Below, piece after piece: positions 4,080-51,363 of a DNA stretch of 64,000 bases; the stretch's first letter is position 1; each line of letters opens with the position of its first letter. The translations under genes and the position numbers were made by a program. This stretch comes from Schmidtea polychroa (lineage: Eukaryota), in assembly GCA_044892525.1 (NCBI GenBank), contig CM097885.1:168826001-168890000 (forward strand). Reading direction: 5' to 3'. Below the pieces are notes generated by a model. The model had not been told where the DNA came from. It was given only the letters and a program-made list of their open reading frames with translations, and made no database searches.

Positions 4080-7000
4080 ATGTGTTTTAAAATATGTCCC
4101 GTATGTAAGACTAGTGACCCCGTAACATATAGCGTTTTTTATAATAAACATAAAAATCATTTAGATAGGTTTAATTTTAAAAAAGATAGTGTTTTTAAAA
4201 GACCCTCAACTATAGAAAAAAATAATAAAAATAAAAAAATTAAATTAGATACTTCTTCTTTTGAATCCCAGGTCGGATTGCCTTTTGTGGAATCCAATGA
4301 TGGATTGGTTGTCGAATCCCATGATGGATTGGTTGTTGAATCCCAGGTCGGATTAGATAATATTTCCCTTGACTCTTGGGATGGATTAAATATAATACAA
4401 ATAGGTGGAAATGTTCCAATAATACAAAAAGATCTAAGAGGTACCCATCAAATATTAAGCTTAAATACAAGCGACTTAAATATAAAAGAAATAATATTTC
4501 CTGAACAACTAATAAAAAAATTACGAGATATTATTAACGAATTAGGCTCCGTCAAAATTCAATTCGGAATAACAATCGAATTTGAAAAAGACGGGGAAAT
4601 AAAGGTTAATAATATCTCAAATTATGCAAAGCCTTTAACTGCATCATTTTTTGACGAAGGCATTAGGGAACTAAACGAGAAAATAAGTAATATCACAGAG
4701 TTAGGAAGTAGCTGGATCATAAAAAAAATAACAGAAATTCACTTCACCATAACAAAGATAAGTAGGCTAAGTAGATTAAGTGGTAGAAGTTTCATTGAAC
4801 TACCTACTTATCTAAAAAATAAATATTGTTTAATTAATATAAAAAACACCGATGATTCATGTTTTTTATATAGCATTTTAGCTATTTTAAAATATGATGA
4901 GGTTAGTAGTTATGCTAGAAATAGGACATCCAGTTATAATTTATCTGAATTAATATATAATCCATTGGACTTACCCATGAAATTAAAAGATATTAGAAAA
5001 TTCGAGGCCAAAAATCCTGGTTTAATAATTAACGTTTTTTCTTATGACAATAACAAACAATTAATAGATAATTACGTTTTAAAACACCCACATTTAGACA
5101 TTATACATCGTTCCAAAGTTTTAAATGGAACTGTAATTAATTTACTATTATTAAATAAAGGGAACAATTTCCATTACGTTGCTATAAGCAATTTAAATAG
5201 GTTATTGAATTGTGGTATCAACACTACTTGTCCTACACGCATACGTTCATTATGGTGCCATCGGTGTTTGAATGGGTTTAATAATAGAAACGCACTAGAA
5301 AAACATGAAATATTATGCAAACGTAATCAATTAGGAACAACTCTTTATACTTTCCCTCAAAATAAATTCTTACAGTTTACTGACTGGTCGAAAACAGTAA
5401 CTCCTCCTTTTGTAGTTTATGCAGATTTTGAGGCTATTTTACCTTCTGATAATGATCATTTCCAACGACACATGCCAATATCTGCTGGTCTTTTACTTGT
5501 AAATAACTTTGACGGATCTAAATCTTATCAGCAGTTCATAGGTTTAGATTGCGTCGAGAGTTTTTTAAGTGCTATAGAGGATATAGCATTAAATAAGGTT
5601 CTTCCTTTTTATTATAAAATGGGTAGGAAACCTATGATGAAATTAACAAAAATTGAACAACGTCAATTTGTTAGTGCATCTGTTTGTTATCTTTGTATGA
5701 AATCTATCGTCGATCCTGTTAGAGATCACGATCATTTTACGGGGAAATACTTGGGTGCAGCTTGTAGCACATGTAACGTAAATAGGAAAATAAATAAAAT
5801 TTTGCCTATCGTATTTCACAACTTGAAGGGATACGATATGCACCATATACTTAAATATGGATTAAATAAATTTAAAAATTGGAATTTAGGGTGCATCCCA
5901 ATAACTACGGAAAAATTTATATCTTTGATTGCTCATTTAGGTAAAATTAGCCTAAGATTCATTGATTTGTATCAATTTGTCAATGATTCTTTGGCTAAAG
6001 CAGTCAAAACTTTGAATTCTTTGCCTTTTACTAATTCTGCTTTTTCTGGCACCATAGTAAGTGAAAAAGGAATCTTCCCTTATAATTTCGCCACTTCTTT
6101 AGATATTCTCCAAACTACTTATGAATTACCACCAATCTGGGAGGGTGTCACTGAGCTTGAGTATGAAAAAGCTCAGGAGATTTGGGTAGAAACTAATTGC
6201 GTAACTTTATTAGATTATATGATGATCTACCTAAAACTTGATTGTTTTCTTTTGGCTGATTTCTTTCATCAGTTTCGGTTGAAATCCATTGCTCACAATA
6301 GATTGGAACCATTGAATTATTTCGGAATTCCAGGCATGTCTTGGTCTTCTGCATTAATGTCTTTAAATGAACCAATTGAACTCATAACTGAAAACGAAAT
6401 GTTTAGCTTTTATGAGGGTGGAATAAGAGGCGGTCTTACTTTTGTGAATAAGCATTACGTAAAAACCGACGAGAACACTGAGTTACTATATATAGATATT
6501 AATAATCTTTATGGCTGGGCTTTAAGTCAATCATTACCTTGTGGCGAATTTTGTTGGGTTCTTGATGGATTTGATAAAATAATGGATGAATGTAGGAATT
6601 TAAATCTTGAATCTTTGTCTTATGGATACACACTTGAAGTTGATCTTGTAATTCCTTCTGAGCTTCATGATAAGTTGGATGATTTCCCTGTAGCTGCTGA
6701 AAAAATGAAACCTGCTGGGTCTAAGGTTGAAAAATTATTATTAACTCATCTTCCAAAATCTAATTATGTTATTCATTGGAGATTATTAAAATTATATTTG
6801 GAACTTGGTGTTAAAGTAACACGTGTAAATAGGGGTGTAAGATTTAAGCAATCACCAATTTTTAAAAAATATATAGATACAAATACTGAATTAAGATCAA
6901 AAAGCGTAAATAGCTTAGATAAAAATTATTATAAATTGCTAAATAATAGTTTATACGGCAAAACAGTTGAAAATTTAAAGAGAAGAATGAATCTTCGTCT

Positions 7001-7847
7001 TTGTACAACTGCCGGTAAATTAGTTAAATATTCGTCAAAACCAACTTTTAAAAAATCTATTAAAATAGCAGATAATTTAATTGCAGCACTATTGAATTCA
7101 GATTCTATATGTTTAGATAGACCGAGTTACATTGGTCAATCTGTACTTGATCTATCTAAACTTAGAATGTATGAATTGCAATATAAGGATCTGGAATCAA
7201 TTCGCAATGAGTTTAATTGTAAAATTAATATCGTTGCAGGTGATACAGATTCTTTTTTCCTCGAAGTCATTAACTGCAAACTTGAGGTTCTTTTACCTGC
7301 AATGGTTCGAGATAATTTATTGGATACTTCCAATTACAATAGTTGTCATTCCTTATATAGTAAGAACCTTGATTCAGTCATTGGAAAGTTCAAAGACGAG
7401 AATAAAGGTCTTAAATATAAGGAGTGGGTTTTTCTTAGACCTAAATGTTATAGCTTGTTGAGTGATGAGGAAACAAAAAAGGCTAAAGGTGTAACATTGA
7501 AAGGTAGTGACATAAAACATCAGTCATACCTGGATTGTTATAACACTAACCAGATTTTTTCGGTTCCTCAGACTAAAATAACAAGCAAAAATCATCAAAT
7601 TTTTACAATTAAAAACACAAAAATAGCACTAACTAACAAAGATGACAAAAGGGTTTGGGTGGGGAAAAATACTAGTCTTGCATATGGGCATGTAAGATTA
7701 AGTGAATTAAATATTGGAGAAAATGTTGGAGAAATTGTTGCAGAAAATGTTGGAGAAAATGATGGAGAAGATGAGGAAGAATTAAATGAAGATTTTGGAG
7801 AAGATGACATCGATATCGATGACGTTATTTTGTCCGATGAGGACTAA
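4080..7847 (+). CDS. Protein-primed family B DNA polymerase (Polinton/Maverick type) with C2HC zinc finger, HNH/EndoVII insertion and acidic tail, 1255 aa
   Basis: ExoI YADFE (D449/E451), ExoII HNLKGYD, ExoIII YLKLD, motif A DINNLYG (D806), long TPR1-like insert, motif B KLLNNSLYGK (K952), TPR2-like insert, motif C AGDTDS (D1055/D1057), RPKCY, KAKGV; intronless open frame. Confidence 0.95.
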   Translation: MCFKICPVCKTSDPVTYSVFYNKHKNHLDRFNFKKDSVFKRPSTIEKNNKNKKIKLDTSSFESQVGLPFVESNDGLVVESHDGLVVESQVGLDNISLDSWDGLNIIQIGGNVPIIQKDLRGTHQILSLNTSDLNIKEIIFPEQLIKKLRDIINELGSVKIQFGITIEFEKDGEIKVNNISNYAKPLTASFFDEGIRELNEKISNITELGSSWIIKKITEIHFTITKISRLSRLSGRSFIELPTYLKNKYCLINIKNTDDSCFLYSILAILKYDEVSSYARNRTSSYNLSELIYNPLDLPMKLKDIRKFEAKNPGLIINVFSYDNNKQLIDNYVLKHPHLDIIHRSKVLNGTVINLLLLNKGNNFHYVAISNLNRLLNCGINTTCPTRIRSLWCHRCLNGFNNRNALEKHEILCKRNQLGTTLYTFPQNKFLQFTDWSKTVTPPFVVYADFEAILPSDNDHFQRHMPISAGLLLVNNFDGSKSYQQFIGLDCVESFLSAIEDIALNKVLPFYYKMGRKPMMKLTKIEQRQFVSASVCYLCMKSIVDPVRDHDHFTGKYLGAACSTCNVNRKINKILPIVFHNLKGYDMHHILKYGLNKFKNWNLGCIPITTEKFISLIAHLGKISLRFIDLYQFVNDSLAKAVKTLNSLPFTNSAFSGTIVSEKGIFPYNFATSLDILQTTYELPPIWEGVTELEYEKAQEIWVETNCVTLLDYMMIYLKLDCFLLADFFHQFRLKSIAHNRLEPLNYFGIPGMSWSSALMSLNEPIELITENEMFSFYEGGIRGGLTFVNKHYVKTDENTELLYIDINNLYGWALSQSLPCGEFCWVLDGFDKIMDECRNLNLESLSYGYTLEVDLVIPSELHDKLDDFPVAAEKMKPAGSKVEKLLLTHLPKSNYVIHWRLLKLYLELGVKVTRVNRGVRFKQSPIFKKYIDTNTELRSKSVNSLDKNYYKLLNNSLYGKTVENLKRRMNLRLCTTAGKLVKYSSKPTFKKSIKIADNLIAALLNSDSICLDRPSYIGQSVLDLSKLRMYELQYKDLESIRNEFNCKINIVAGDTDSFFLEVINCKLEVLLPAMVRDNLLDTSNYNSCHSLYSKNLDSVIGKFKDENKGLKYKEWVFLRPKCYSLLSDEETKKAKGVTLKGSDIKHQSYLDCYNTNQIFSVPQTKITSKNHQIFTIKNTKIALTNKDDKRVWVGKNTSLAYGHVRLSELNIGENVGEIVAENVGENDGEDEEELNEDFGEDDIDIDDVILSDED

Positions 7848-22040: not shown

Positions 22041-25000
22041 ATGCAATCGAGTAAATATGATCCAACCAATTTAATAAGTAGTCTTTCTTTAGAATATAAA
22101 AATGCTAGAGAGAAAAAAATAAACAATAAAATCACAAAATACAACAATAAACAAAAGACAATTCGAATATTTATTTCATCAACTTTTCGGGATTTTCACA
22201 ACGAAAGAAATTTACTGGTCACGAAAGTTTTCCCTAGACTTCGTGAGTGGTGCGCAAATCACGGCTTGTATTTGGTTGAATGTGATTTACGATGGGGCAT
22301 TCCGGCAGATTCGTCGAGAGAAGAAACTTTAATGACATGTTTTGACGAAATAGAGAAAGGAAAACAAGAATGTAATGAAATGAATTTCTTTTTGGGTTTG
22401 ATTGGAGACAGATACGGTTGGATTCCAAGTGAAGCCGAAATAACAGAGAATATTAGAAAAAGGTAATTTTTGTGAAATGTTTAAGATTATATTAAATATT
22501 TATTAAATTATTAAGTTACAATTACTGTTGAAATGAAAATTGTATGATACATATTATCTTTAATTAAATTATTTTGTAATTTTTTGAATTACCGTTTTTT
22601 CCTCCAGGTACTGCGTTATCTACACAAAAAATATCAAAATACACAGAGGAAAAATTGTATTTCAAAGCGAACGTTATTTCATTGTAATTGTTATGCTTTT
22701 CTTATAGTAATGGAAATTTACAACAATTCTTCACATTTTAAAAATCTGGTAAACTTTCTTTTCGTCAAATGGAAATTTAAATTATTTCCTAGTGAAAATA
22801 ATTATTCAATTAAAAAAATACATGTTTTACCACGTAATTGAAGCATTTCCATATTCTACGATTTCAATTAGTAATACCTTTAAATATATCAGTTTTTAAT
22901 GCAACATATGAAACATTAACATTTAGTGTTCTAACCTAATTCAACATACTAGCTAGTTTATTTTAAGCTTGTTATTATTATAAAATAAACGAATAAAACG
23001 ACTAGAAGGGTCATGGAGCCGTTAAATGGAACTAACCTCTAGAATCAAAGACATTTTAGAAGATTTATTGAATATTAAATTACTGAATATGAAATTCTTT
23101 TTCAAAATCGCTAAAAAATAAATAAATACAAAACAATATTTAATTGGGTTAAAATTGTTTATTTTCCCAAATACAATTGTATTCTTCTACAATTTCTTGG
23201 TCTTCAAGCATCTAGGAACCTCCTGGTGATTTCAGGAAACCGTTTCTGACACATGTTGTTGTAACTGCACCCCAGCTATCAATGATCCAACTGCATATGT
23301 CACTCTACGGTAGCTATTCATTTTCCCAGTCTTAGTGTATTCTTTAACACCACTCATCATCCAATCCTCCCATTTTGCCCGCTACTTGGTTTTAAACGAA
23401 TTATTTATTGTTAGATCAAGAAGTTGAACTAGTTTCGCCAATCTACTTAGAATTATGGCTTGTTTAGAAAATTTCATGTTGGTTTCTATTACGTCTGGTA
23501 TTGTATGTGCAAAACATGAGTCCATTATCAACAATGATTTTGAATTAAAAAAAGCTCCTTTTTGTTTACTCCAAACGTTTTCCACTAAAACTTTCATCAC
23601 CTTGTGGACCACGAGTCGTGGTTGACCCACCTTTTATCATCAGCGGTAACTATAATATCATTAGGAAATTATTATAAGAACTTTTTTTCCAATTTCACCA
23701 CTGATTATTTTTTCCATCGAATTTATTAAAAAGAGAGCTTGAAGCCTATAAATCAGAAATATATCGATGTTTTTTGATACTCACGAATTTTCGGCACTGC
23801 CTTTTTCAAGTGAAAGAGTACATCCAACCAATCTTCAACAAAGTTTTTATCTCTGAAAGCTTCAAAAACATCGGCCAACAGAAAATTATCCAGCTTAAGG
23901 TACACTTGCTAATAATCTAACAGCGTCTCACAGTTGTAATGGTGCCATATTTGGTTGAAATGTAATTATTCTGTTTGATTAATTTCTGGTGAAATTCTGG
24001 TGAAATACCTCCATTGATGTAGTAATATCATAAGAAAAAATGTCATTACTAGTTATTAACTGTCAACCAAAAACTTTGAAGTAACTGGAAGACTTGGTAA
24101 ACATTTTGATAAATTTGCAATACTGTTATTTAAAAATCGCAAGGAATCAATGAATCTAATTCTTCTTCAATCTGTTGTCGCTTTAAGTGTGAGAAATCTT
24201 TCTTTTTATTAGAGAATAACAATTAAATTCCCCGACCTGAAAAATATTTTTCAGACTGAGATGGAAATTACAATCAGAGAGCTAATAATGCCGCTGAATG
24301 TGAGTAAGAGTACTATTTATAGATTACTCAGTGAAAGTGGCATAAGAAAATTATGCTCTCGCTTTGTATAACGTTTTGAACTACTGAAATGCAGTGCTAC
24401 TAAGAGAATTTTCAGATTTTGGATGATATTGGAGAGGATATTTTAGGATAATATTATTACCATGGATGAGACACTACTTTCGCTTTATGTTCCACAATTT
24501 AAACGGGAATCTACAGTGTGGAAACTACTCCTGAAATCTGTTCTTTAAAGATGAGGTCATCAACAAATCACGGAAAGGCGCTCATATTGACTGTGTTTTC
24601 GGATGTCACTGGCATTATTCTAGCTGATTTTGCCCAAAATGGTGTTCAAATTAACAAATCCTGCTACTTCGAACTTGCACAGGAAGCATGGAAACTCCGA
24701 AAGAAAGGTCGGGTGTGTGGGCTTTATTATTTACACGATTACCCTCCCATTCATACAAATTGAAATTAGATTTAACACATTTATTTAATTAAATTTAAAA
24801 GATCATTTATTTAAATTTAAATTTTATATTAAAATAAAATTCTGAGAGTGGAAAATATTTTTCATTTCTATTTTATTGTAAAGCTATCATAATTATATAT
24901 GCATGTTAAAATTAGGGCTAATTTAATGACTTGCGCTGAAATGAAGTTCTATGCATATCTACTGCTATCTGTACCAAAAATCAATATGATATTCATAGCA

Positions 25001-27282
25001 CGTCAAGTGAGTAGTTCTATCTGCAAGTTAGATATTATAGAACGCTCGACTTCCTAATATAATTTAAAATAACATGTCAACTCGCTGCAAATTACTTTGG
25101 GTGGTTTTGCTATTCGAGCATTTTAATTAACTCCTGGTGCAAGTGGTTAATAACTAGGCTTTATCAATTACATTTTAGGAATATTTGATAAGAATACTTG
25201 TATTTTATTTTAAATCTAAGGTACAAATGGATAGATGGAAGCTCAGTTACTTTAATGGAGATACTTCATGGAATGATTCGAACTCTAACTCCAAATGGTC
25301 TTCTTATGGTAAGATTGCCAGATTTTATTAAAGATCTTCCAGATAATTTGAGATCTGAATTTCTGGAAACGGATCCTATGGCAGCATCAAATTTAAATAT
25401 CTTTAAAGAATTTTTAAAAAATACTTTTGAGAAGCATAATTCTTTTCATTTTTATAGTGCCTCTTATGACGGAGTTGTCTATGATAAATTCATTGATAAA
25501 AAAAGAGTTCTTGTAAAATTGGATGACTTTGAAAATCAAATTGAAAAACATTTTATCAAATGCATTAAAGAAAATTTTTTACTATTTAAAGATGAAAAAG
25601 CTGACAACATTGATGAAGTTCATGAAGTTATGGTTGAATGCCTTACAAATCAAAATCCAATACCCCATGAGACTTTTCAAAAGCTTTTTGATACTCTTAA
25701 AAGTAAGCTGTCTAAAAAAGAAAGAAGTTCAAATTCTATTTTTATGCTTTCCGGAGAAGCTGGATCTGGAAAATCTACAACCTTAGCACACTGTGCAAAA
25801 ATATTGAAGGATTTTCCGAATTGTGATTCGTTTTTTCATAGTTTTTCCTGCACTTCTAACAGTATGTATAACACGACCATTTGTGAAAGACTTTATAGAT
25901 TTCTCTCAACTGACAATTTAAATCCTAATAAATCTTATTTAGAGAAAAAGAATAAGATTAGTTATTTATTAGAAAACGGACCGAAACGTCATGACAAAGA
26001 TGTGTTTTACGTTTTCTTGGATGGTATTGATGAAATGTCAAGTGATCAAACATTAGGGTGGCTTCCGAAATTAACTTCTGAACGTATTGTTATAATAATT
26101 AGTTGTTTACTAGATACCTCTCCGTCATCTTTCTATTCCAATTTACACAATTCCGACAAGTCTATTTCGGAATTATCAATACAAGTAATGCCAAAGACTC
26201 AATTATGTGAAATGGTAAAGAATTATCTCGACAGTTTCGGTAAAAAGCTCGACGTTGACCAACTCAATTGCTTAATGAGCTTCAAAAATTCAAACAATCC
26301 ATTGTGGTTGATTTCAGCTTGTGAAGAATTAAGAATTCATGGAGACTACTTTTCTCTGACAAAATTTATTTTGTCTCTTCCGTCTACGATCTGTGAACTG
26401 AATAAAATGGTTATTAAAAGACTGATAAATCAAGATTCAAAAAATATCTTGAAAACATTTTTACAACTTTTGGTCATTTCTAAGAGTGGATTGTGGGAAA
26501 GTTTAATAAAGAATATGTTGGCAATGAAGTTAGACAGTGCTCAACCTGTAAGCCATTCATTATGGACAGAAATTGTATGCCATTTGAAAGGATTCCTACT
26601 GATACAATCCATGTCTTTGCCGTTAATCAAATTTCGACATAGGGTCATGAAGGCGGCTATTGAAGAAGAGTTGGCGATGAGTGATAAATTCCAATTAAAT
26701 CTCCATTACGAAATGTCGGTGTTCTTTGAAAATATAATTGGAAATTCTGGAGATTTGTTTCTAGCAGATTACATTTATCATTTAATCAAGTCGAATTCTC
26801 GAAATCGTTTGATTAAATTCATTCGAACTCGCAAATCGTGGAGAATCTTTAAAAACTCATTTATTCGAGGAAAAATTGTTTCAAGTATGCGTTGCATGAA
26901 TTGCGTTGTGAATATACCTTCACAGAAGTCTCAAGAATTAATGATGTGTCAAACGTGTAAGTTCGTTTCTGGAGAATTAGCGGAGCATGCAATGAATAAG
27001 AACAGTTGTTATTTCTGTGGAACATTTGTATTTAATAATAATGGTGATGTTGCTAAACTTTATCCGTGCCAATTTCACAGGCACCCAATTGTGAGTTTAA
27101 TAAAATGTAGTCTATGCGAAAATCCAATAGGAGGAAAAGGAGAGAGCCTCAAAGTTTGTCAGATGTGTAAATTGCAAAATCTTTCTGGGAGCTGTGGGGT
27201 AATAGTTAAGGAAGAGGACATTTTGTTTCATCAACAACTTGAGTATAGTCATTCAGTTTATCGCATTGAATCGTTAATTTAA
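22041..27282 (+). CDS. DUF4062-like / STAND (NACHT-like) NTPase / PHF5-like zinc-knot protein, paralog A; exons 22041-22462 and 25221-27282, 827 aa
   Basis: RIFISSTFRDF...ECDLRWG...FLGLIGDRYGW (DUF4062-like, as in the TEP1/NWD/NPHP3 family); Walker A GEAGSGKST; Walker B VFLDGIDE; GT-AG phase-2 intron rejoins in frame (422+2062 nt = 828 codons). Confidence 0.85.
23200..23950 (-). mobile_element. Degraded pogo/Tigger-like DDE transposase fragment in the paralog A intron
   Basis: SLLIMDSCFAH...LVQLLDLTINNSFKTK resembles the DDE_1 LLxxDxxxxH...QPLD...FK motifs; multiple stops. Boundaries approximate. Confidence 0.65.
24200..24763 (+). mobile_element. Degraded mariner (DD34D-type) transposase fragment in the paralog A intron
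   Basis: HTH region VSKSTIYRLL, IITMDET, LTVFSDVTGIILADF, LHDYPPIHT; frameshifts and stops. Confidence 0.75.
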
Positions 27283-33117: not shown

Positions 33118-35755
33118 ATGTACAGAAAACACGTTAGTTTAATCGACAAAAATGACCCAATATCTGCAGATCATATCAAATCATCCCTTTGGGACCAAAT
33201 TGAATTTGAATATTCAAAAGCTTTGATGAATAATCGCTATCGTGACTCGTCTGTTGATAAAGATTTAAAAGTAATTCGAATTTTTATTTCTTCGACATTC
33301 AAAGATTTCTACAATGAAAGAGATATATTGGTAAGAAATGTGTTTCCAAAATTACGGAAATGGTGTGAAGAACAAGGATTGTTTCTTGTGGAGTGTGATT
33401 TAAGATGGGGTGTACCTGTTGATGCTACAAATTTGGAAGCTGTTTCATATTGCTTGGATGAAATTGAAAAATCAAGAGAAGAAACAAATAATAATAACTT
33501 TTTCCTTTGTTTAATTGGAGAAAGATTTGGATGGGTACCATCGGAAGAAACGCTGTTGGAAAAATTGAAACTCAAGTAAAAATTTATTTATTATAAATAA
33601 TTGTATTATAGAAAAATATATTTAAAGAATTTCACTGAATATTAACTTAGTAACTAATGTAAATATTTTGATTAATTACAATTATTAAAACAATAAAAAT
33701 ATTTTCAGATATGATTTTATCAAAGACAGTTCAGTAACTTTAATGGAAATTGTTCATGGTGTGTTGAGAAGTGGAACAGAAAATAGTCTTTTTATGATTC
33801 GATCTAAAAATATTCTGGAAAATATGCCGAAATCGCATTTAAAATATTTTGAAGAAAGTGATAAATTATTAAAGTCTAATGTTAACGAACAGAAAGAATT
33901 TATTAAAAAGCATTTTTCAAAATCTGGTTGTGTAAAGGATTATTCTATTAATTATGAATCAACTGTTGTTGATCCAATATCTGGAAAAGAAAGAATTCAA
34001 TTTTCAGATTTTGATGAATTTTCGAAAATTGTAGAGGATTATTTTAAATCTCAGATTTTAGATTTTAAAGTCAAGCATAAATTGTCACTTGCAGTGGAAG
34101 ATCAAAATGAGGATATGATTCATAAATCTCATTTAGTTTCTATAAATAAAACCTCTTTAAAACGAATGTCGTACATTGAATTTTTAAGCAATCAAATAAA
34201 AAATTCAAATTTGGAAAACGAAAGGAATCCCATTATTATTATAACCGGTGAGGCAGGTTCCGGCAAATCAACAATAATTTCTCACATTATTGAATATTAT
34301 TCAAATCTTGAAAACGAAAATGTATTTTATCATTTTTGTGGTGCCTCGAATACGAGTCACAGTCAATTGAGTATTCTTAAAAGGTTAGAAAATTATTTGA
34401 AATTAGTTCTTAATCTTGATGTTTCAATTTCTAACGAAGAAAATCCTAATTTAAGTAAGTCATTGGAAAACCTTTCCGAACCAAAACTGAAAATTTTCAT
34501 CGACGCATTAGATGAATTATGGGACTTGGATATTGTGAACCAATTTCCGAAATTTACTTCAAAAAACATTCAACTTATAGTTTCATGTTTATGTGACACA
34601 GGTATAGATTCTTTTTACTCAAAATTTATGACTCAGGACTTTGTCTATATTCAGTTGCCCATTGAAAAAATGAATACTATTCAATTGATAGATATAACAA
34701 ATAAATATTTATACAACTTTGGTAAAAAATTAGATTCTCTCCAATTAGATAAATTGTTGAGCTTTGAAAATTCTCACAATCCTTTATGGCTTCTTTCAGC
34801 TTGTGAAGAATTACGAATGCATGGAGACTATTCCAGTCTTACAAAATTAATAACTTCACTTCCTCCTTCGATAATAGATTTAAATAGAATGATTATTAAA
34901 AGATTGTCTAACCAAGATGTGACAAACATCCTCAAAACGGTTTTACAATTATTAGTAATTTCAAGAGCCGGAATATGGGAAAGTCTGATTAAAGATATTC
35001 TAGCTGAAATTTTAAATTTTTCTGAGCCAATAAGCCATTCTACTTGGTCACACATTATGTGGCAATTAAAGGGATTTCTGTTAATCCAGTCGATTCCTTT
35101 ACCGTTAATAAAAATTCGTCATCGGGTAATGAAAGAATCCATTGAAGAAGAATTATCAATGGATGAAGAGTATAAAATAACACTTCATCATAAGATTTCT
35201 ATATATTTAGAAAAACTATACGATAACGAGAGTGATGTATTTCTTTCAGATTACATGTATCACCTTGTGAAATCAAATGCACGAAATCGAATGATAGATT
35301 TTATGAGAAGTAGGAAATCCTGGAAAGTTTTGAAACAGCCTTTTGTGCGCTCAAGAATCATGCTGAGTACGAGATGCATCAATCCAAAATTGACAGACAA
35401 ACAAAGCGCGTTGATGATGTGTATTCGATGTGCAAACAAATCTGGTGAATTGTCCATTTTTTCGATCAATAGGAACAGTTGCTTTTTTTGTGGCAACCTT
35501 GTTGCAGCTAATAACAACGATGAGAATAAACTGTTTCCATGTCAATTTCATAAAAATCCCAATCCACAGTTGGGGAAATGCACTCTATGCAACTCGATCG
35601 TACCGTCAAAACAAGGAGAACCGGTGAAAGCGTGTCAAATGTGCAGTTTAAACAACCCAAGAAACTGTGGAATCATTGTCAATGAAAAAGACATTCTATA
35701 TCGCCAACAGCTGGGATTCAGCAAAGCAGTTTACAGAATTGAATCGATAATATAA
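33118..35755 (+). CDS. DUF4062-like / STAND (NACHT-like) NTPase / PHF5-like zinc-knot protein, paralog B; exons 33118-33575 and 33709-35755, 834 aa
   Basis: Same motifs as paralog A (RIFISSTFKDF, GEAGSGKST, IFIDALDE, NPLWLLSACEELRMHGD); 133-nt phase-2 GT-AG intron at the same position; 458+2047 nt = 835 codons. Confidence 0.88.
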
Positions 35756-36647
35756 ATAACTTTTCAGTAACAAAACAGTAAATAAAACGACCACAGTGAT
35801 TTAAAACAACATTTTGTACACATTTATTGATCTAAATAAAATGATCTGTTCACTGAATTGAGTAAAGGGAAATTTTCCACCTCGTATGGAGCATCGAGAG
35901 GCGTGAAATAATCTGATGGGCATCGAGATACAAAATTGCAAAACGAAAGGTGCCTTAATTCGTCTTCTTCGTAGCCTAAAATAAAGAAATCAAGAGGGGA
36001 TTTATTAGGATTTGTAAGAAAGAAAAATAATTGATTCTCTATGTTTTGTTAGCGACAGTGGTTTGCAGTAAGTATCCAGGAGTCCCAACAGCCCCATCCC
36101 CGTTGCTAAGGACGAAAATTATGAAACTACATTATTATAAATAGCTTTTGATATATTTATATTATAAAAAAGATTAAAAGCCATGTAACCGTTTCAGTGA
36201 ATCATCTGGGGGTCCCGACACCTCTCGCCTTCGTTGCTAATGACGGAGATTGTAAAGCTACATTATTATGGACAGCTTCTGACATAGTTTCCCAGTTCAT
36301 AAATGTACATTATAACCAATTATCGCTTTCAACTTTATAAAATTTATTAAGAACGTTTCAAAAATTGGGCTATGTTAAAAAAAAGTAAATTTTAATTAAT
36401 TATCAATTATAGTTATTTATAGTATTGGATGAGCTGTGATGTATAATTTGTCATCATTTCGCCTAGTATTATACAAATGAGAACGCAAAAATCTGACAGA
36501 CAACTTCAAGGAAGATTTAGGATGGCTAATAAGCTATCAATTTCGCGGAAGAATTACATTTTTAATCCTGTTCAAAAATGTTATAAAAAACTAAATTTAT
36601 ATATTAAAATAATATCTTGAATTTTAATAAATAATTAAAAATATAAC

Positions 36648-38973: not shown

Positions 38974-40735
38974 TAGGCCTACCATGAACCTTTTGAAAAA
39001 ATCTGGGACATTTTCAAAATAACCGGGACACAAAAACAAATCAATTTAATTATGAAAAAATATATTTATTAACAATAAATATTTAATTTTGATACTTTTC
39101 TTGGGAGTGAATCATTTCAAGCAACTGAAAGTTTGATTTAATTTTCTTGTAAAACTACAACTAATTTTTGAGTTATATTGTAGAGAAGCGGTCGGGGGAA
39201 CCGGGGTAAATTACCTCAAATGGGGTAAAAAATGAAATTTTTGGGGGTAAAAATGAAACTTTTGTGAGTAAAAAGTATATATTTTTAATTTACTATTTTA
39301 TGAACCTGTTAGTATTTTTTTCAACTTAAATAATTTAGCGACATATGCAGGCCACGCCATCTCACTCCCCACCACTAGAGTGTTCTCGAGTTATATCTTT
39401 GCGCAGTAAAGCACAGCCCCAGCTACCTGCTCAGTCCGTGCCATGCCGTCAAGATACAAATACATTGACGAGTTAGAGAGCTAGTTTTTACTAGTTAGTT
39501 GCTGACAAGACCACCATTTTATCATTAATCATCGATATATCGATCAAGATAAGCAGCAATTTAAAAATTTAATTCAAGTATTTTACAACTATTATTTTCT
39601 GTCGCCCTTCAGATGGCAGCAAATAGAAAAAGAACATACCAAGACGAATTCCTTAATTACGGTTTCACACAAATAGAAGACAATGGTACAATGAAACCAC
39701 AGTGTGTTATATGTATGAAGGTACTGACTTCAGAATCTTTCAAAATAAGTCAATTGAAGAAACATTTAGATAATTTGCATTTACACTGTCTTCCAAACCG
39801 CGAGAATACTTTGCAAATTTAGAAATATCTGTTAAAAGACAAAGATTGAATAGCAACTTGTTTGGTACATTTGATCAGCATTCAGCATCAAGGGCTAACT
39901 TTGAAATGGCCTGGTTGATTGCTCAAATAAGAAACCATACACTATTGGTGAAGATTTGGTTAAACCAGCTGCTGTAAAAATGGCAGAGATTATGTGTGGT
40001 CGAAAAGAAGCGAAGAAACTGAATTCAGCGCCCTTGTCTGCGAGAATTGTGAAAGAACGAATTTCTATATTAGCAGAAAATGTGAAGGAACAGGTTATTT
40101 TCGCATTAAAACAGGCTAAATATTTTGCTATTCAGCTTGATGAGACAACTGATTTTAGTAGCAATTCACAGCTAATGGTATATGTTCGCTACAAAGGTGC
40201 AGATAATTTTGAAGAGGAATTGCTGTTTTGTTCTCCTCTCGATTTGAGATCTCGTGGAATTGATGTCTACAATAAAGTAAATGAATACTTCAATGCGCAA
40301 AGTTTAAAATGGGAAAACTGTATTTATGTATCTTTGGATGGAGCTCCAGTTATGCCGGGTCATATTAATGGTTTTTCGGCTTTCGTAAAAAAAATAACCC
40401 AAATATTGAAGTAACTCACTGTATGATCCATCACCAGGCCCTTATGGTCAAATATTTAGAACCTACACTGGCATCCGTCATGATGTCATCAAGATTGTAA
40501 ATTTTATCAAGGGACATGCACTAAACACGCGGCTATTTCGTGAATTATGTCAGGACGGTGAAGCTGAATATACGGACCTACTTTATTATACAAAAGTAAG
40601 GAAATGTACTAAATCGAGTATGGACTCTCAAAACTGAAGTCGAAATTTTTATGGTTGATCAATAATATAGTCTCGCAGATAAGTTTAAAAACTAAATTGT
40701 CAACCCTCAATTGTACCCCAATGGGTTTCAATTTG

Positions 40736-48957: not shown

Positions 48958-51363
48958 TTAGGGTGGGTCGAAAATTTTTTTTTTCTCCAAACATGCCTAA
49001 AATGTTGTGCTTATGCTAGAAAATGAAATATCCCTGCAAAAGACTGCTGTTTAAAAGGGTTTACAGGTCCCAACTTTTGTTTGTATGTATTAGTACTATC
49101 CCAGTAAAAATGCTCGCACACGTGCCATTGTAAATTCATCCTGCAAGCAGTCACACGCTTGCAGAAAGACCATTTTTGACATGCTCGATTCACAAGTCCA
49201 AGCTAACGCGTGCATGTATAGAGAGGTTAATTCACGGAAGCACCTTCACACAAGCACTCACAAAGACAATTTCTTCTAAACAATACTAACACACACACTA
49301 CAGTCAACACATAATCCACATGGATACTACTAGTCAGTCTAAACTCAGATAATTTAATTTGTTTCGATTGGATGTCAAGTGTTTGCTGGACCTAATTAAA
49401 AAAGTTAACTTGATGATTCACTTTTATTTTGCCAGAGCTGAGTACAGAAGAGCAGTTATGAAGGGACAGAGAAATGAGCAACAGAGACACATGTTTGCTA
49501 GTAAACGCTTTTCTGAAAGATATGGAACTGTTATCCTCTCAAACAATCATCGATCCCGCAAAATTACGGCGTCAGAGAAAGTACTGGAGGGAGAGAGAAA
49601 TCGAACAGCATTCAGCAGAAGCGAAAAACTTGATTTGCCTCGGTTTCGACGGGAAACAAGATTCCATCTTACTTCATAGAAGGATCCTAAAAGAGGAGCA
49701 TTATGTGATTGTCGCCTTTCCAGGGGATACATATATCGATCATGCTGTACCTCAAAGTAGTAAAGCTGTGGATATTGGCAAAGAAATCATGTCAATCATC
49801 GTTAGCACGCAGTCCTCACTGACCATTCAAGCAATTGTGTGCGATGGAACCAATACAAACACCGGAAAAAATAATGGAATAATCATAAGACTCGAAAAAA
49901 GCCTAGGGCGACCTCTACAATGGCTGATATGCTTGTTGCATGCAAATGAATTGCCATTCAGGAAGTATTTTTCAGTCGTCGATGGTGGAGAAACAAAAGG
50001 TCCAAAAACGTCATGTGGTGAAATAGGAAGCGTTCTTGATTTTGATCCAAAAGACAAGCCCTTAGTAGCCTTTATGTCCCTTCCTGGAAAGGTCGTAGAT
50101 ATTAGTGAAAATGTCAAGAAAGAATTGAACACTGATCAATTGTATTTCCTCAGAGTATGCTTGGCAGTCCAGAAAGGGTACCACAACAACAAGGATGTCC
50201 CTTTTCTACAAATGGCACAACCAGGAAATTTGAATCACAGTCGCTGGCTAACGAAAGCTAATAGAATTCTGCGACTATATATGTCCGAAACTGCTCCATC
50301 TGAACCTCTCATGCGAATAGTGAAATTTATTGTCAATTTCTATGGACCGTCATGGTTTTATATAAAGACTCACTCGTCATGCCAAGATGGTGCAAGAAAT
50401 ATTTTTTATATGCTCCAACTTCTGCAGGATTTGGATCCATCAGACCAAGAAATCATCTTTCCTGTCATTCAGAACAACAATTACTTCTCACATCCAGAAA
50501 ATATACTCCTAGCTGCTGTTGGTGATGATGATGAAGAAATCAGAAAGTTTGCAACAGAAAAAATCATAACTGCAAGACAAAATTTTCTCCCTTCCGAAGT
50601 GATTCGCACTACGGACAAGAATACTGTCTTTCTTCAGTCGTCTGCTACATCATATGTTGACATGATTGACTGGACAAAATGTAATTTGACGCCTCCCCCT
50701 CTTTTATCTCATATATTGGATCATGAATTGAAGATGAATAAGAAAATTACATTAGAACAATTTCCCTGTCATTCTCAAGCCGTTGAAAGAGCCATCAAAG
50801 ATGTTTCTTCTGCCAGTTGCAAAGTGTTTGGTCACAAGTCCAGACATGGTATGGTACTACTGTGTAAAAAATCAAGGAAGGAATTGCCCAAGGTGCAAAG
50901 CAAAGCTGATTTCATGTGACTTCTTTTTATGCCCTCGCTAATACATTTCTAAACTTTTGGCTGGATGTTTTTAATAAAAAATAATTTCGAAAGTTGATTT
51001 TTGTCTTTGAAAAGGATGATTCAAATTTGGCCCTTCCTAATCACTGACGTTGTCAGGATATATTTCAATGCGGGATGAGGACACAGAATATACTATCTCA
51101 GCCCAAGAGAGTAAATAATATACTTATAAGCTCTTAAGAAAGCTACATCTAAATATGGACAAAGGCGCAAAACACATTCCGACACTAGCCAAATTACATT
51201 GTTTTCACACTTATGTTGAACTGCATTTTCGGAGAAAAGTTGGGAGCAGTAAATGTCCATAAATCTAAGTAAAATGGTTTGATTCGATTTTTCTATACCA
51301 AAATACAACTTTTTAACCATGTTTCCTTTCTTGAACTCAAAATTTATTAACATTCGACCCACC

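Follow-up and report, generated by a model that had tools for sequence, protein, structure and literature searches.

The stretch analysed here – 64,000 nucleotides of Schmidtea polychroa DNA (NCBI GenBank assembly GCA_044892525.1, contig CM097885.1, positions 168,826,001 to 168,890,000 of the forward strand), below called the window – is AT-rich and eukaryotic, with a GC content of 0.18–0.35, and comes from an assembly of 781 Mb. On its forward strand lie two genes, paralogs A and B, each of which begins with a DUF4062 domain and ends with a small cysteine-rich domain, referred to here as the zinc module (Table 1). Gene B is spliced and transcribed: a 2548-nt contig from run X1 maps to the window in the two blocks listed in Table 1, with the splice joint at 33575/33709, and pieces of the transcript also occur in runs X2 and X3, which belong to another study; the DNA-like run X15 contains the gene B region in one unspliced piece. 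The zinc module lies at the end of an open reading frame of 670 codons (33743–35755, forward strand), and the joining of exons 1 and 2 yields an in-frame coding sequence of 834 codons, with its start at 33118. Exon 2 encodes the end of the TIR-like domain, the STAND NTPase, the helical domain and the zinc module.

Paralog A, modelled by homology to B, would encode a protein of 827 residues, and its exon 1 was also recovered as a DUF4062 match in a search of the genome. The proteins are 44% identical over 686 residues, and the genes are old tandem paralogs. The whole genome holds two copies of the zinc module and only three DUF4062 loci, one of these duplicated on a small contig.

Table 1. Features of paralogs A and B in the window (positions counted from its first nucleotide).
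Feature	Position	Strand	Basis
Paralog A, exon 1 (DUF4062)	22041..22462	+	open reading frame; splice donor inferred by homology to B
Paralog A, exon 2, with zinc module at 26890–27282	25221..27282	+	splice acceptor inferred; homology to B
Gene B, exon 1, with the start codon and the bulk of DUF4062 (TIR-like)	33118..33575	+	transcript contig covers 33137–33575
Gene B, intron, 133 nt, GT..AG	33576..33708	+	skipped by run X1 contig; present in DNA-like run X15
Gene B, exon 2 to stop codon	33709..35755	+	transcript contig covers 33709–35817
Gene B, candidate catalytic Glu (E of MEIVHG), TIR-like domain	33746..33748	+	alignment via homologue P0006
Gene B, Walker A, GEAGSGKST	34247..34273	+	read off translation
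Gene B, Walker B-like, IFIDALDEL	34493..34519	+	read off translation
Paralog B, C-terminal zinc module, 127 residues plus stop codon	35372..35755	+	ligand conservation; silent transcript differences

From its N-terminus, the gene B protein consists of a DUF4062 head, a STAND P-loop NTPase, a helical domain and a basic zinc module of 127 residues. Pfam recognises DUF4062 with 42.3 bits (cut-off 24.7) and the NTPase both as NPHP3_N (40.4 bits, cut-off 24.8) and as NB-ARC (25.7 bits, cut-off 23.5), and the head matches the TIR-like crystal chain of TEP1, 11gz_A, with an E-value of 2.4e-13. DUF4062 has been described as a family of TIR-like NADases, with catalysis by TEP1 depending on E1008 (preprint 10.64898/2026.05.01.722283). 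The motif M-E-I-[LV]-H-G of the full-length homologue P0006 aligns with T-E-M-E-V of 11gz_A, its Glu falling on chain residue 115, which we infer to be E1008 of TEP1, provided that the 220-residue chain corresponds to TEP1 894–1113. The Glu of MEIVHG in gene B is a candidate catalytic residue, the putative counterpart of chain residue E115. Judging by the sequence, the TIR-like head is apparently intact, and the NTPase looks intact as well. Such a head gives no guarantee of NADase activity, since the purified human proteins NWD1, NWD2 and NPHP3 cleaved no NAD and TEP1 alone was active (preprint 10.64898/2026.05.01.722283).

The nearest full-length relative in the databases is a Haliotis 'TPR repeat-containing protein DDB_G0287407-like', which combines DUF4062 and NPHP3_N with TPR repeats, whereas a test for TPR and WD40 found no Pfam repeat family matching the gene B residues past the helical domain. 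Given this domain order in the Haliotis protein, the zinc module takes the place of a repeat sensor. Human DUF4062 proteins, TEP1 and some others, have WD40 repeats in this C-terminal position.

The initial annotation had described the module as a series of twelve metal ligands with the spacing C-x14-CxxC-x16-CxxC-x16-CxxH-x9-CxxC-x14-CxxC-x7-C, and a recount from the translation gives exactly this pattern, with ligand codons starting at 35375, 35420, 35429, 35480, 35489, 35540, 35549, 35579, 35588, 35633, 35642 and 35666. The 11 Cys and 1 His of the 127 residues all stand at the 12 proposed ligand positions and should bind three zinc ions. That paralog A preserves the full set, as had also been claimed, is borne out by pairwise alignment: 12 of 12 ligands are kept, at 52% identity over the module.

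The module extends well beyond these two genes. A search of 1.84 billion representative proteins with a profile built from the modules of A and B returned eight hits with E-values from 3e-8 to 9e-4. One homologue, XP_077977671.1 of the acorn worm Glandiceps talaboti, is a protein of 984 residues with DUF4062, NPHP3_N and, at its C-terminus, the module; another lies on a 762-kb eukaryotic metagenome contig, in a multi-exon gene whose upstream exons encode the DUF4062–NTPase–helical part. In the latter – and likewise in L010 – the first Cys lies just past a short intron, again with the x14 spacing. A metagenome scan with a narrower alignment gave one further locus, a near-duplicate. In the alignment A4, which comprises 11 sequences (A, B and nine outside homologues, some of them partial), the ligand is present at all 12 positions in every sequence that covers the position; eight of the nine outside homologues are 24–30% identical to B, and the short fragment P0008 is 45% identical. 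The proposed ligands are thus conserved across distant animals. Besides them, conservation extends only to an R before the first Cys, to G-x-L-S...N between pairs 1 and 2 and to a G after pair 2, and every member of the family is basic, with more K+R than D+E.

Other routes to relatives added little. Word-indexed protein searches gave no match with the module region as query, one TPR relative only with the whole open reading frame and, with the family alignment, no proteins beyond those already found. Sequence searches of the PDB, with the module and with profiles of 2 and 10 sequences, gave chance rows only and no PHF5A, and feature and structure searches of the ESM Atlas returned only low-scoring zinc-ribbon-like clusters. 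No Pfam family covers the module – the best, PHF5, stays under its cut-off – and a description of it is absent from the full-text literature searched on DUF4062-NACHT, PHF5 and DDB_G0287407 proteins. The module, which was met only in the DUF4062-STAND architecture, is an undescribed domain family; proteins of the DUF4062-STAND kind are themselves known, and it is the architecture ending in a zinc module that is new.

The initial annotation had also proposed that the zinc fold is under purifying selection. The two paralogs are saturated for silent differences (pS 0.72–0.84), so no dN/dS ratio can be computed for the module; dN between the paralogs is 0.41 in the module, 0.73 in the NTPase, 0.69 in the linker and 0.29 in the helical region. 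More direct is the comparison of transcript contigs with the window, which differ at 12 sites: 8 of these lie within the module, and all 8 are silent, with no replacement among them. As silent changes make up 20% of the possible single-base changes in the module, the probability of 8 silent out of 8 is about 2e-6. Gene conversion from A was considered as the source of this silent cluster and rejected, the alternative letters matching A in only 3 of the 8 cases. One of the eight differences falls in the codon of ligand C57. Purifying selection on the putative zinc module is thus well supported, because the ligands persist, 12 of 12, where silent sites are saturated and because the transcript differences are all silent; the conservation seen throughout the family points the same way. 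Neither the A–B comparison nor the transcript differences, too sparse for statements on single sites, give any sign of diversifying selection. This constraint, together with the mere three DUF4062 loci of the genome, offers no direct support to the earlier suggestion of an immune sensor, for which diversification would have spoken, and that role stays a conjecture.

The known family nearest to the module is PHF5A/Rds3 (PF03660; 5SYB, 2K0A), a subunit of the spliceosomal SF3b. The two share the order of their ligands – one Cys, five pairs of the CxxC type, one Cys – as well as similar spacings from the third pair on and similar knuckles (C-h-h-C-x-x-h-V), and paralog B has in common with PHF5A also C-x-x-I-V-N and, past the last Cys, D-h-h-Y...G-F. 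They differ in the third pair, which is CxxH in the module, a His replacing one PHF5A Cys, and in the distance from pair 1 to pair 2, which is 16–18 residues in the module but 3 in PHF5A. The three PHF5A motifs quoted in the initial annotation (GRCVIC, CPKIVN and DLFYERKKYGF) are all present in the genome's own PHF5A (L003), an intronless gene of 109 codons that scores 161–161.9 bits against PF03660. GKCTLCNSIV of B, whose GKCTLC was there set beside GRCVIC, fits the other knuckle of PHF5A, GKCVICDSYV (residues 28–37), at least equally well, and a tail resembling DLFYERKKYGF occurs in only 4 of the 11 family sequences.

BLASTP aligns B with L003 at 21.9 bits (pairwise E 0.001, 27% identity over 64 residues), whereas a pairwise comparison of paralog A with PHF5A shows no similarity (E 0.82). 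PF03660 gives B 16.8 bits (E 0.0083), where the cut-off is 26.7; P0002 and P0009 reach E-values of 0.00098 and 0.00042, and the best member stands at 20.9 bits, again below the cut-off; only positions 28–64 of the 104 in the profile are covered, in a shifted register. For these three mutually distant members out of ten, PHF5 is the top of 24,736 Pfam families; others match Yippee, FYVE, C1 or RING weakly. Two further weak matches to PF03660 in the genome (L004 and L005) turned out to be an unrelated zinc-ribbon open reading frame. Between the family and PHF5A, hhalign gives a local score of 22–24 and a global score of 10, with a probability of 10–17%; in a control of 150 shuffles of PHF5A in which every Cys was kept fixed, local scores were 13.7 +/- 2.6 and global scores 2.7 +/- 2.1, with 1 and 3 of the 150, respectively, reaching the real score.

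The alignments also disagree on register. Pfam and local hhalign on A4 lay pair 4 of the family on pair 2 of PHF5, while BLASTP, global hhalign and Foldseek (see below) return the register of the initial annotation – an ambiguity made possible by the repeat of the G-[KR]-C-V-I-C knuckle within PHF5A itself. Nor are the lines of evidence for PHF5 independent, since all of them use the same sequence features. What stands of the label 'PHF5-like' is the ligand order and the place of PHF5A as nearest known family; membership does not stand, and with scores below threshold, a register that varies and a paralog A unlike PHF5A, the module lies outside the PHF5 family by its present definition.

The same observations can be accommodated by an unrelated three-zinc domain, built for instance of consecutive or cross-braced zinc ribbons or of treble clefs, whose PHF5A-like order of ligands would be convergent, and we see this as an evenly balanced prospect. 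The internal repeat of PHF5A makes weak alignments easy to obtain, two registers score about equally while every score stays below threshold, and the longer segment between pairs 1 and 2, the E-value of paralog A and the scattered weak matches of other members all fit convergence. It accounts less readily for the first rank of PHF5 in Pfam for three mutually distant members, for its first rank among Swiss-Prot models described below and for a similarity that exceeds that of Cys-fixed shuffles, or for the strand-like hydrophobic runs that flank the terminal single Cys residues of the module – before the first and after the last – as in the PHF5A stem.

In PHF5A, 12 of the 13 Cys bind three zinc ions (PMC5458519). 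CXXC motifs 1 and 4 make up one site and motifs 2 and 5 another; at the third, motif 3 is joined by two single Cys located in loops of a 'stem' of N- and C-terminal strands. The cap forms a left-handed trefoil knot, in a fold shared only by Rds3; motif 1 has a helical turn, motif 5 a helix, and motifs 2 and 4 are knuckles (PMC5458519). Zinc sites of this type are conceivable for the module because its ligand order could reproduce them. The models of the module from three predictors are unusable: mean pLDDT in AlphaFold2 is 32 with two sequences and 42 with eleven, ESMFold2 with three zinc ions gives 49–53, and P0003, a homologue modelled in the ESM Atlas, stands at 0.42. Neither Foldseek nor VIA-align, run with the poor AlphaFold2 model, gave a significant match. 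Against 550,129 Swiss-Prot models, rows 1–3 of the Foldseek output were PHF5A/B, at nonsignificant values (E 3.6, TM 0.15–0.18), with pair 4 lying on pair 4 and the alignment running through the C-terminal tail; the first PDB row, with the same TM values, was a spliceosome chain of 105 residues, probably PHF5A. Over these Foldseek results E ran from 2.6 to 3.6. The 11-sequence model is least uncertain around pairs 1 and 4 (pLDDT 52–66), which is too low in confidence to count as evidence; it places short helices at pairs 1 and 5 and none at 2 and 4, which matches the description of PHF5A and is likewise not counted.

On this basis, an interleaved, knotted zinc arrangement shared with PHF5A is a tentative proposal, somewhat more doubtful than not. 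Slightly more doubtful again is the broader idea that the PHF5A/Rds3 knotted three-zinc fold has a second, ancient branch in this module, employed as the sensing end of an animal TIR-like NADase STAND switch.

A resemblance to a spliceosomal protein at the end of a STAND receptor might also suggest an integrated decoy, that is, a PHF5A copy taken up into an immune receptor, as in plant NLRs, to serve as bait for pathogen factors that attack the spliceosome. The architecture – an effector head, a STAND NTPase and an odd C-terminal domain – and the weak resemblance to PHF5 are all that recommends it. We consider it very improbable, because the module is old and tied to one architecture in distant animals, being found in the same setting in a hemichordate and other distant eukaryotes, and because it is far from the host PHF5A, with less than 30% identity; the genome has only its three DUF4062 loci, and the polymorphism within the module, all of it silent, bears no sign of an arms race. 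That the cysteine pattern arose by chance in a decaying or non-coding gene end is practically negligible as an explanation, given a frame open over 834 residues and covered by a spliced transcript, 12 ligands conserved in 11 sequences, and 8 silent against 0 replacement differences.

The reading that we regard as reasonably probable is that gene B encodes an 834-residue switch protein of the TIR-like/STAND type, in which a three-zinc C-terminal module, nearest to PHF5A among known families, forms the sensing or regulatory end. In STAND switches such as APAF-1, release of autoinhibition by the sensor is followed by oligomerisation of the NTPase and activation of the heads. By analogy with APAF-1, and with the STAND-type switch that has been proposed as a model for TEP1 (preprint 10.64898/2026.05.01.722283), the zinc module of gene B might hold the protein off before a signal arrives; binding of a partner to the module would then let the NTPase oligomerise, and the oligomer would cluster the TIR-like heads, so that NAD could be cleaved. 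As the module is positively charged, the signal is perhaps a nucleic acid or an acidic protein. A co-fold of the NTPase–helical part, the module and three zinc ions, aimed at the autoinhibition idea, scored 0.01 with the verdict 'no answer', which speaks neither for nor against it.

Recognition of DUF4062-STAND proteins as TIR-like NADase switches is recent and concerns TEP1 of the vault and an anti-phage system of bacteria. The exchange of a repeat sensor for a compact, basic and strongly constrained putative three-zinc domain would make the trigger of such a switch accessible to experiment. If the PHF5A knot is present in the module, this would be the first case of that fold beyond the spliceosome, and a knotted zinc domain would have been reused as a receptor module; if it is not, the module nonetheless represents a zinc domain family without annotation and merits a database entry.

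Set beside known systems, gene B is closest in build to the DUF4062-NACHT proteins (TEP1, NWD1/2, NPHP3 and the invertebrate DDB_G0287407-like proteins), with which it shares the DUF4062 head, the P-loop STAND NTPase and the helical domain. These proteins end in TPR or WD40 repeats, whereas gene B ends in its zinc module of 127 residues; and while NADase activity is known, among the human DUF4062 members, for TEP1 only, that of gene B is predicted. With APAF-1 and other STAND switches it has in common the sequence of effector head, NTPase, helical domain and C-terminal sensor – the proposed mechanism being drawn by analogy from these – but the head of APAF-1 is a CARD rather than a TIR-like enzyme, and its sensor a propeller rather than a small zinc domain.

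Some plant NLRs carry integrated domains, and like them gene B bears an unusual domain on a STAND receptor; its module, however, is ancient and specific to one architecture, and has none of the look of a recently captured host target. PHF5A, finally, is a free and highly conserved protein of about 110 residues, whereas the module that most resembles it forms the C-terminus of an 834-residue STAND protein.

The transcripts of gene B, the two-exon gene that encodes a DUF4062 head, a STAND NTPase, a helical domain and a C-terminal zinc module, differ from the genome at 12 sites, eight of which lie within window 35372-35711, inside the 384-nt stretch that codes for the zinc module. Such clustering is improbable by chance (binomial P 7e-5), all eight differences are silent, and silent divergence in this stretch is about 20-fold that in the remainder of the gene. 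Gene conversion from the tandem relative, paralog A, does not account for the cluster, because the letter in A agrees with the alternative letter at only three of the eight sites.

Immediately downstream of gene B, a separate transcript contig (see the table) has a word depth of about 200, compared with 46 for gene B, and in three runs continues past 35985 into letters that differ from the window. Most likely the stretch is an exon from a different transcript.

Elsewhere in the genome, the search returned only two other weak matches to PF03660 (the PHF5/Rds3 family), L004 and L005, both at 18.2 bits. The open reading frame (ORF) at L004, which adjoins a long tandem repeat ORF and has a C-terminal zinc ribbon of the TFIIS type, is not related to the zinc module. 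Beyond paralog A and gene B, DUF4062 was found at a single locus, on contig C4 – presumably an orthologue of NWD1, NPHP3 or TEP1 – with a copy on the small contig C314, which may be a haplotig.

Features of the window and of the searched genome assembly (G000)
Feature	Location	Strand	Remark
DUF4062 locus	G000 C4:84287934-84288170		genome search
DUF4062 locus, copy	G000 C314:42260-42496		genome search
Transcript contig	window 35789-35985		just 3' of gene B
L004	G000 C1, ~268.8 Mb		weak PF03660 match
L005	G000 C1, ~269.2 Mb		match equal to L004
154-codon ORF	L004 1495-1959	-	CxxC pairs; C-terminal zinc ribbon
1255-codon ORF	window 4080-7847	+	D-T-D-S motif
481-codon ORF	window 49474-50919	+
152-codon ORF	window 39956-40414	+

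None of the three other long ORFs in the window matched a Pfam family at E 0.001 or better. The two shorter ones may be transposable element remnants, and the motif in the longest recalls the family-B DNA polymerases found in self-replicating mobile elements.
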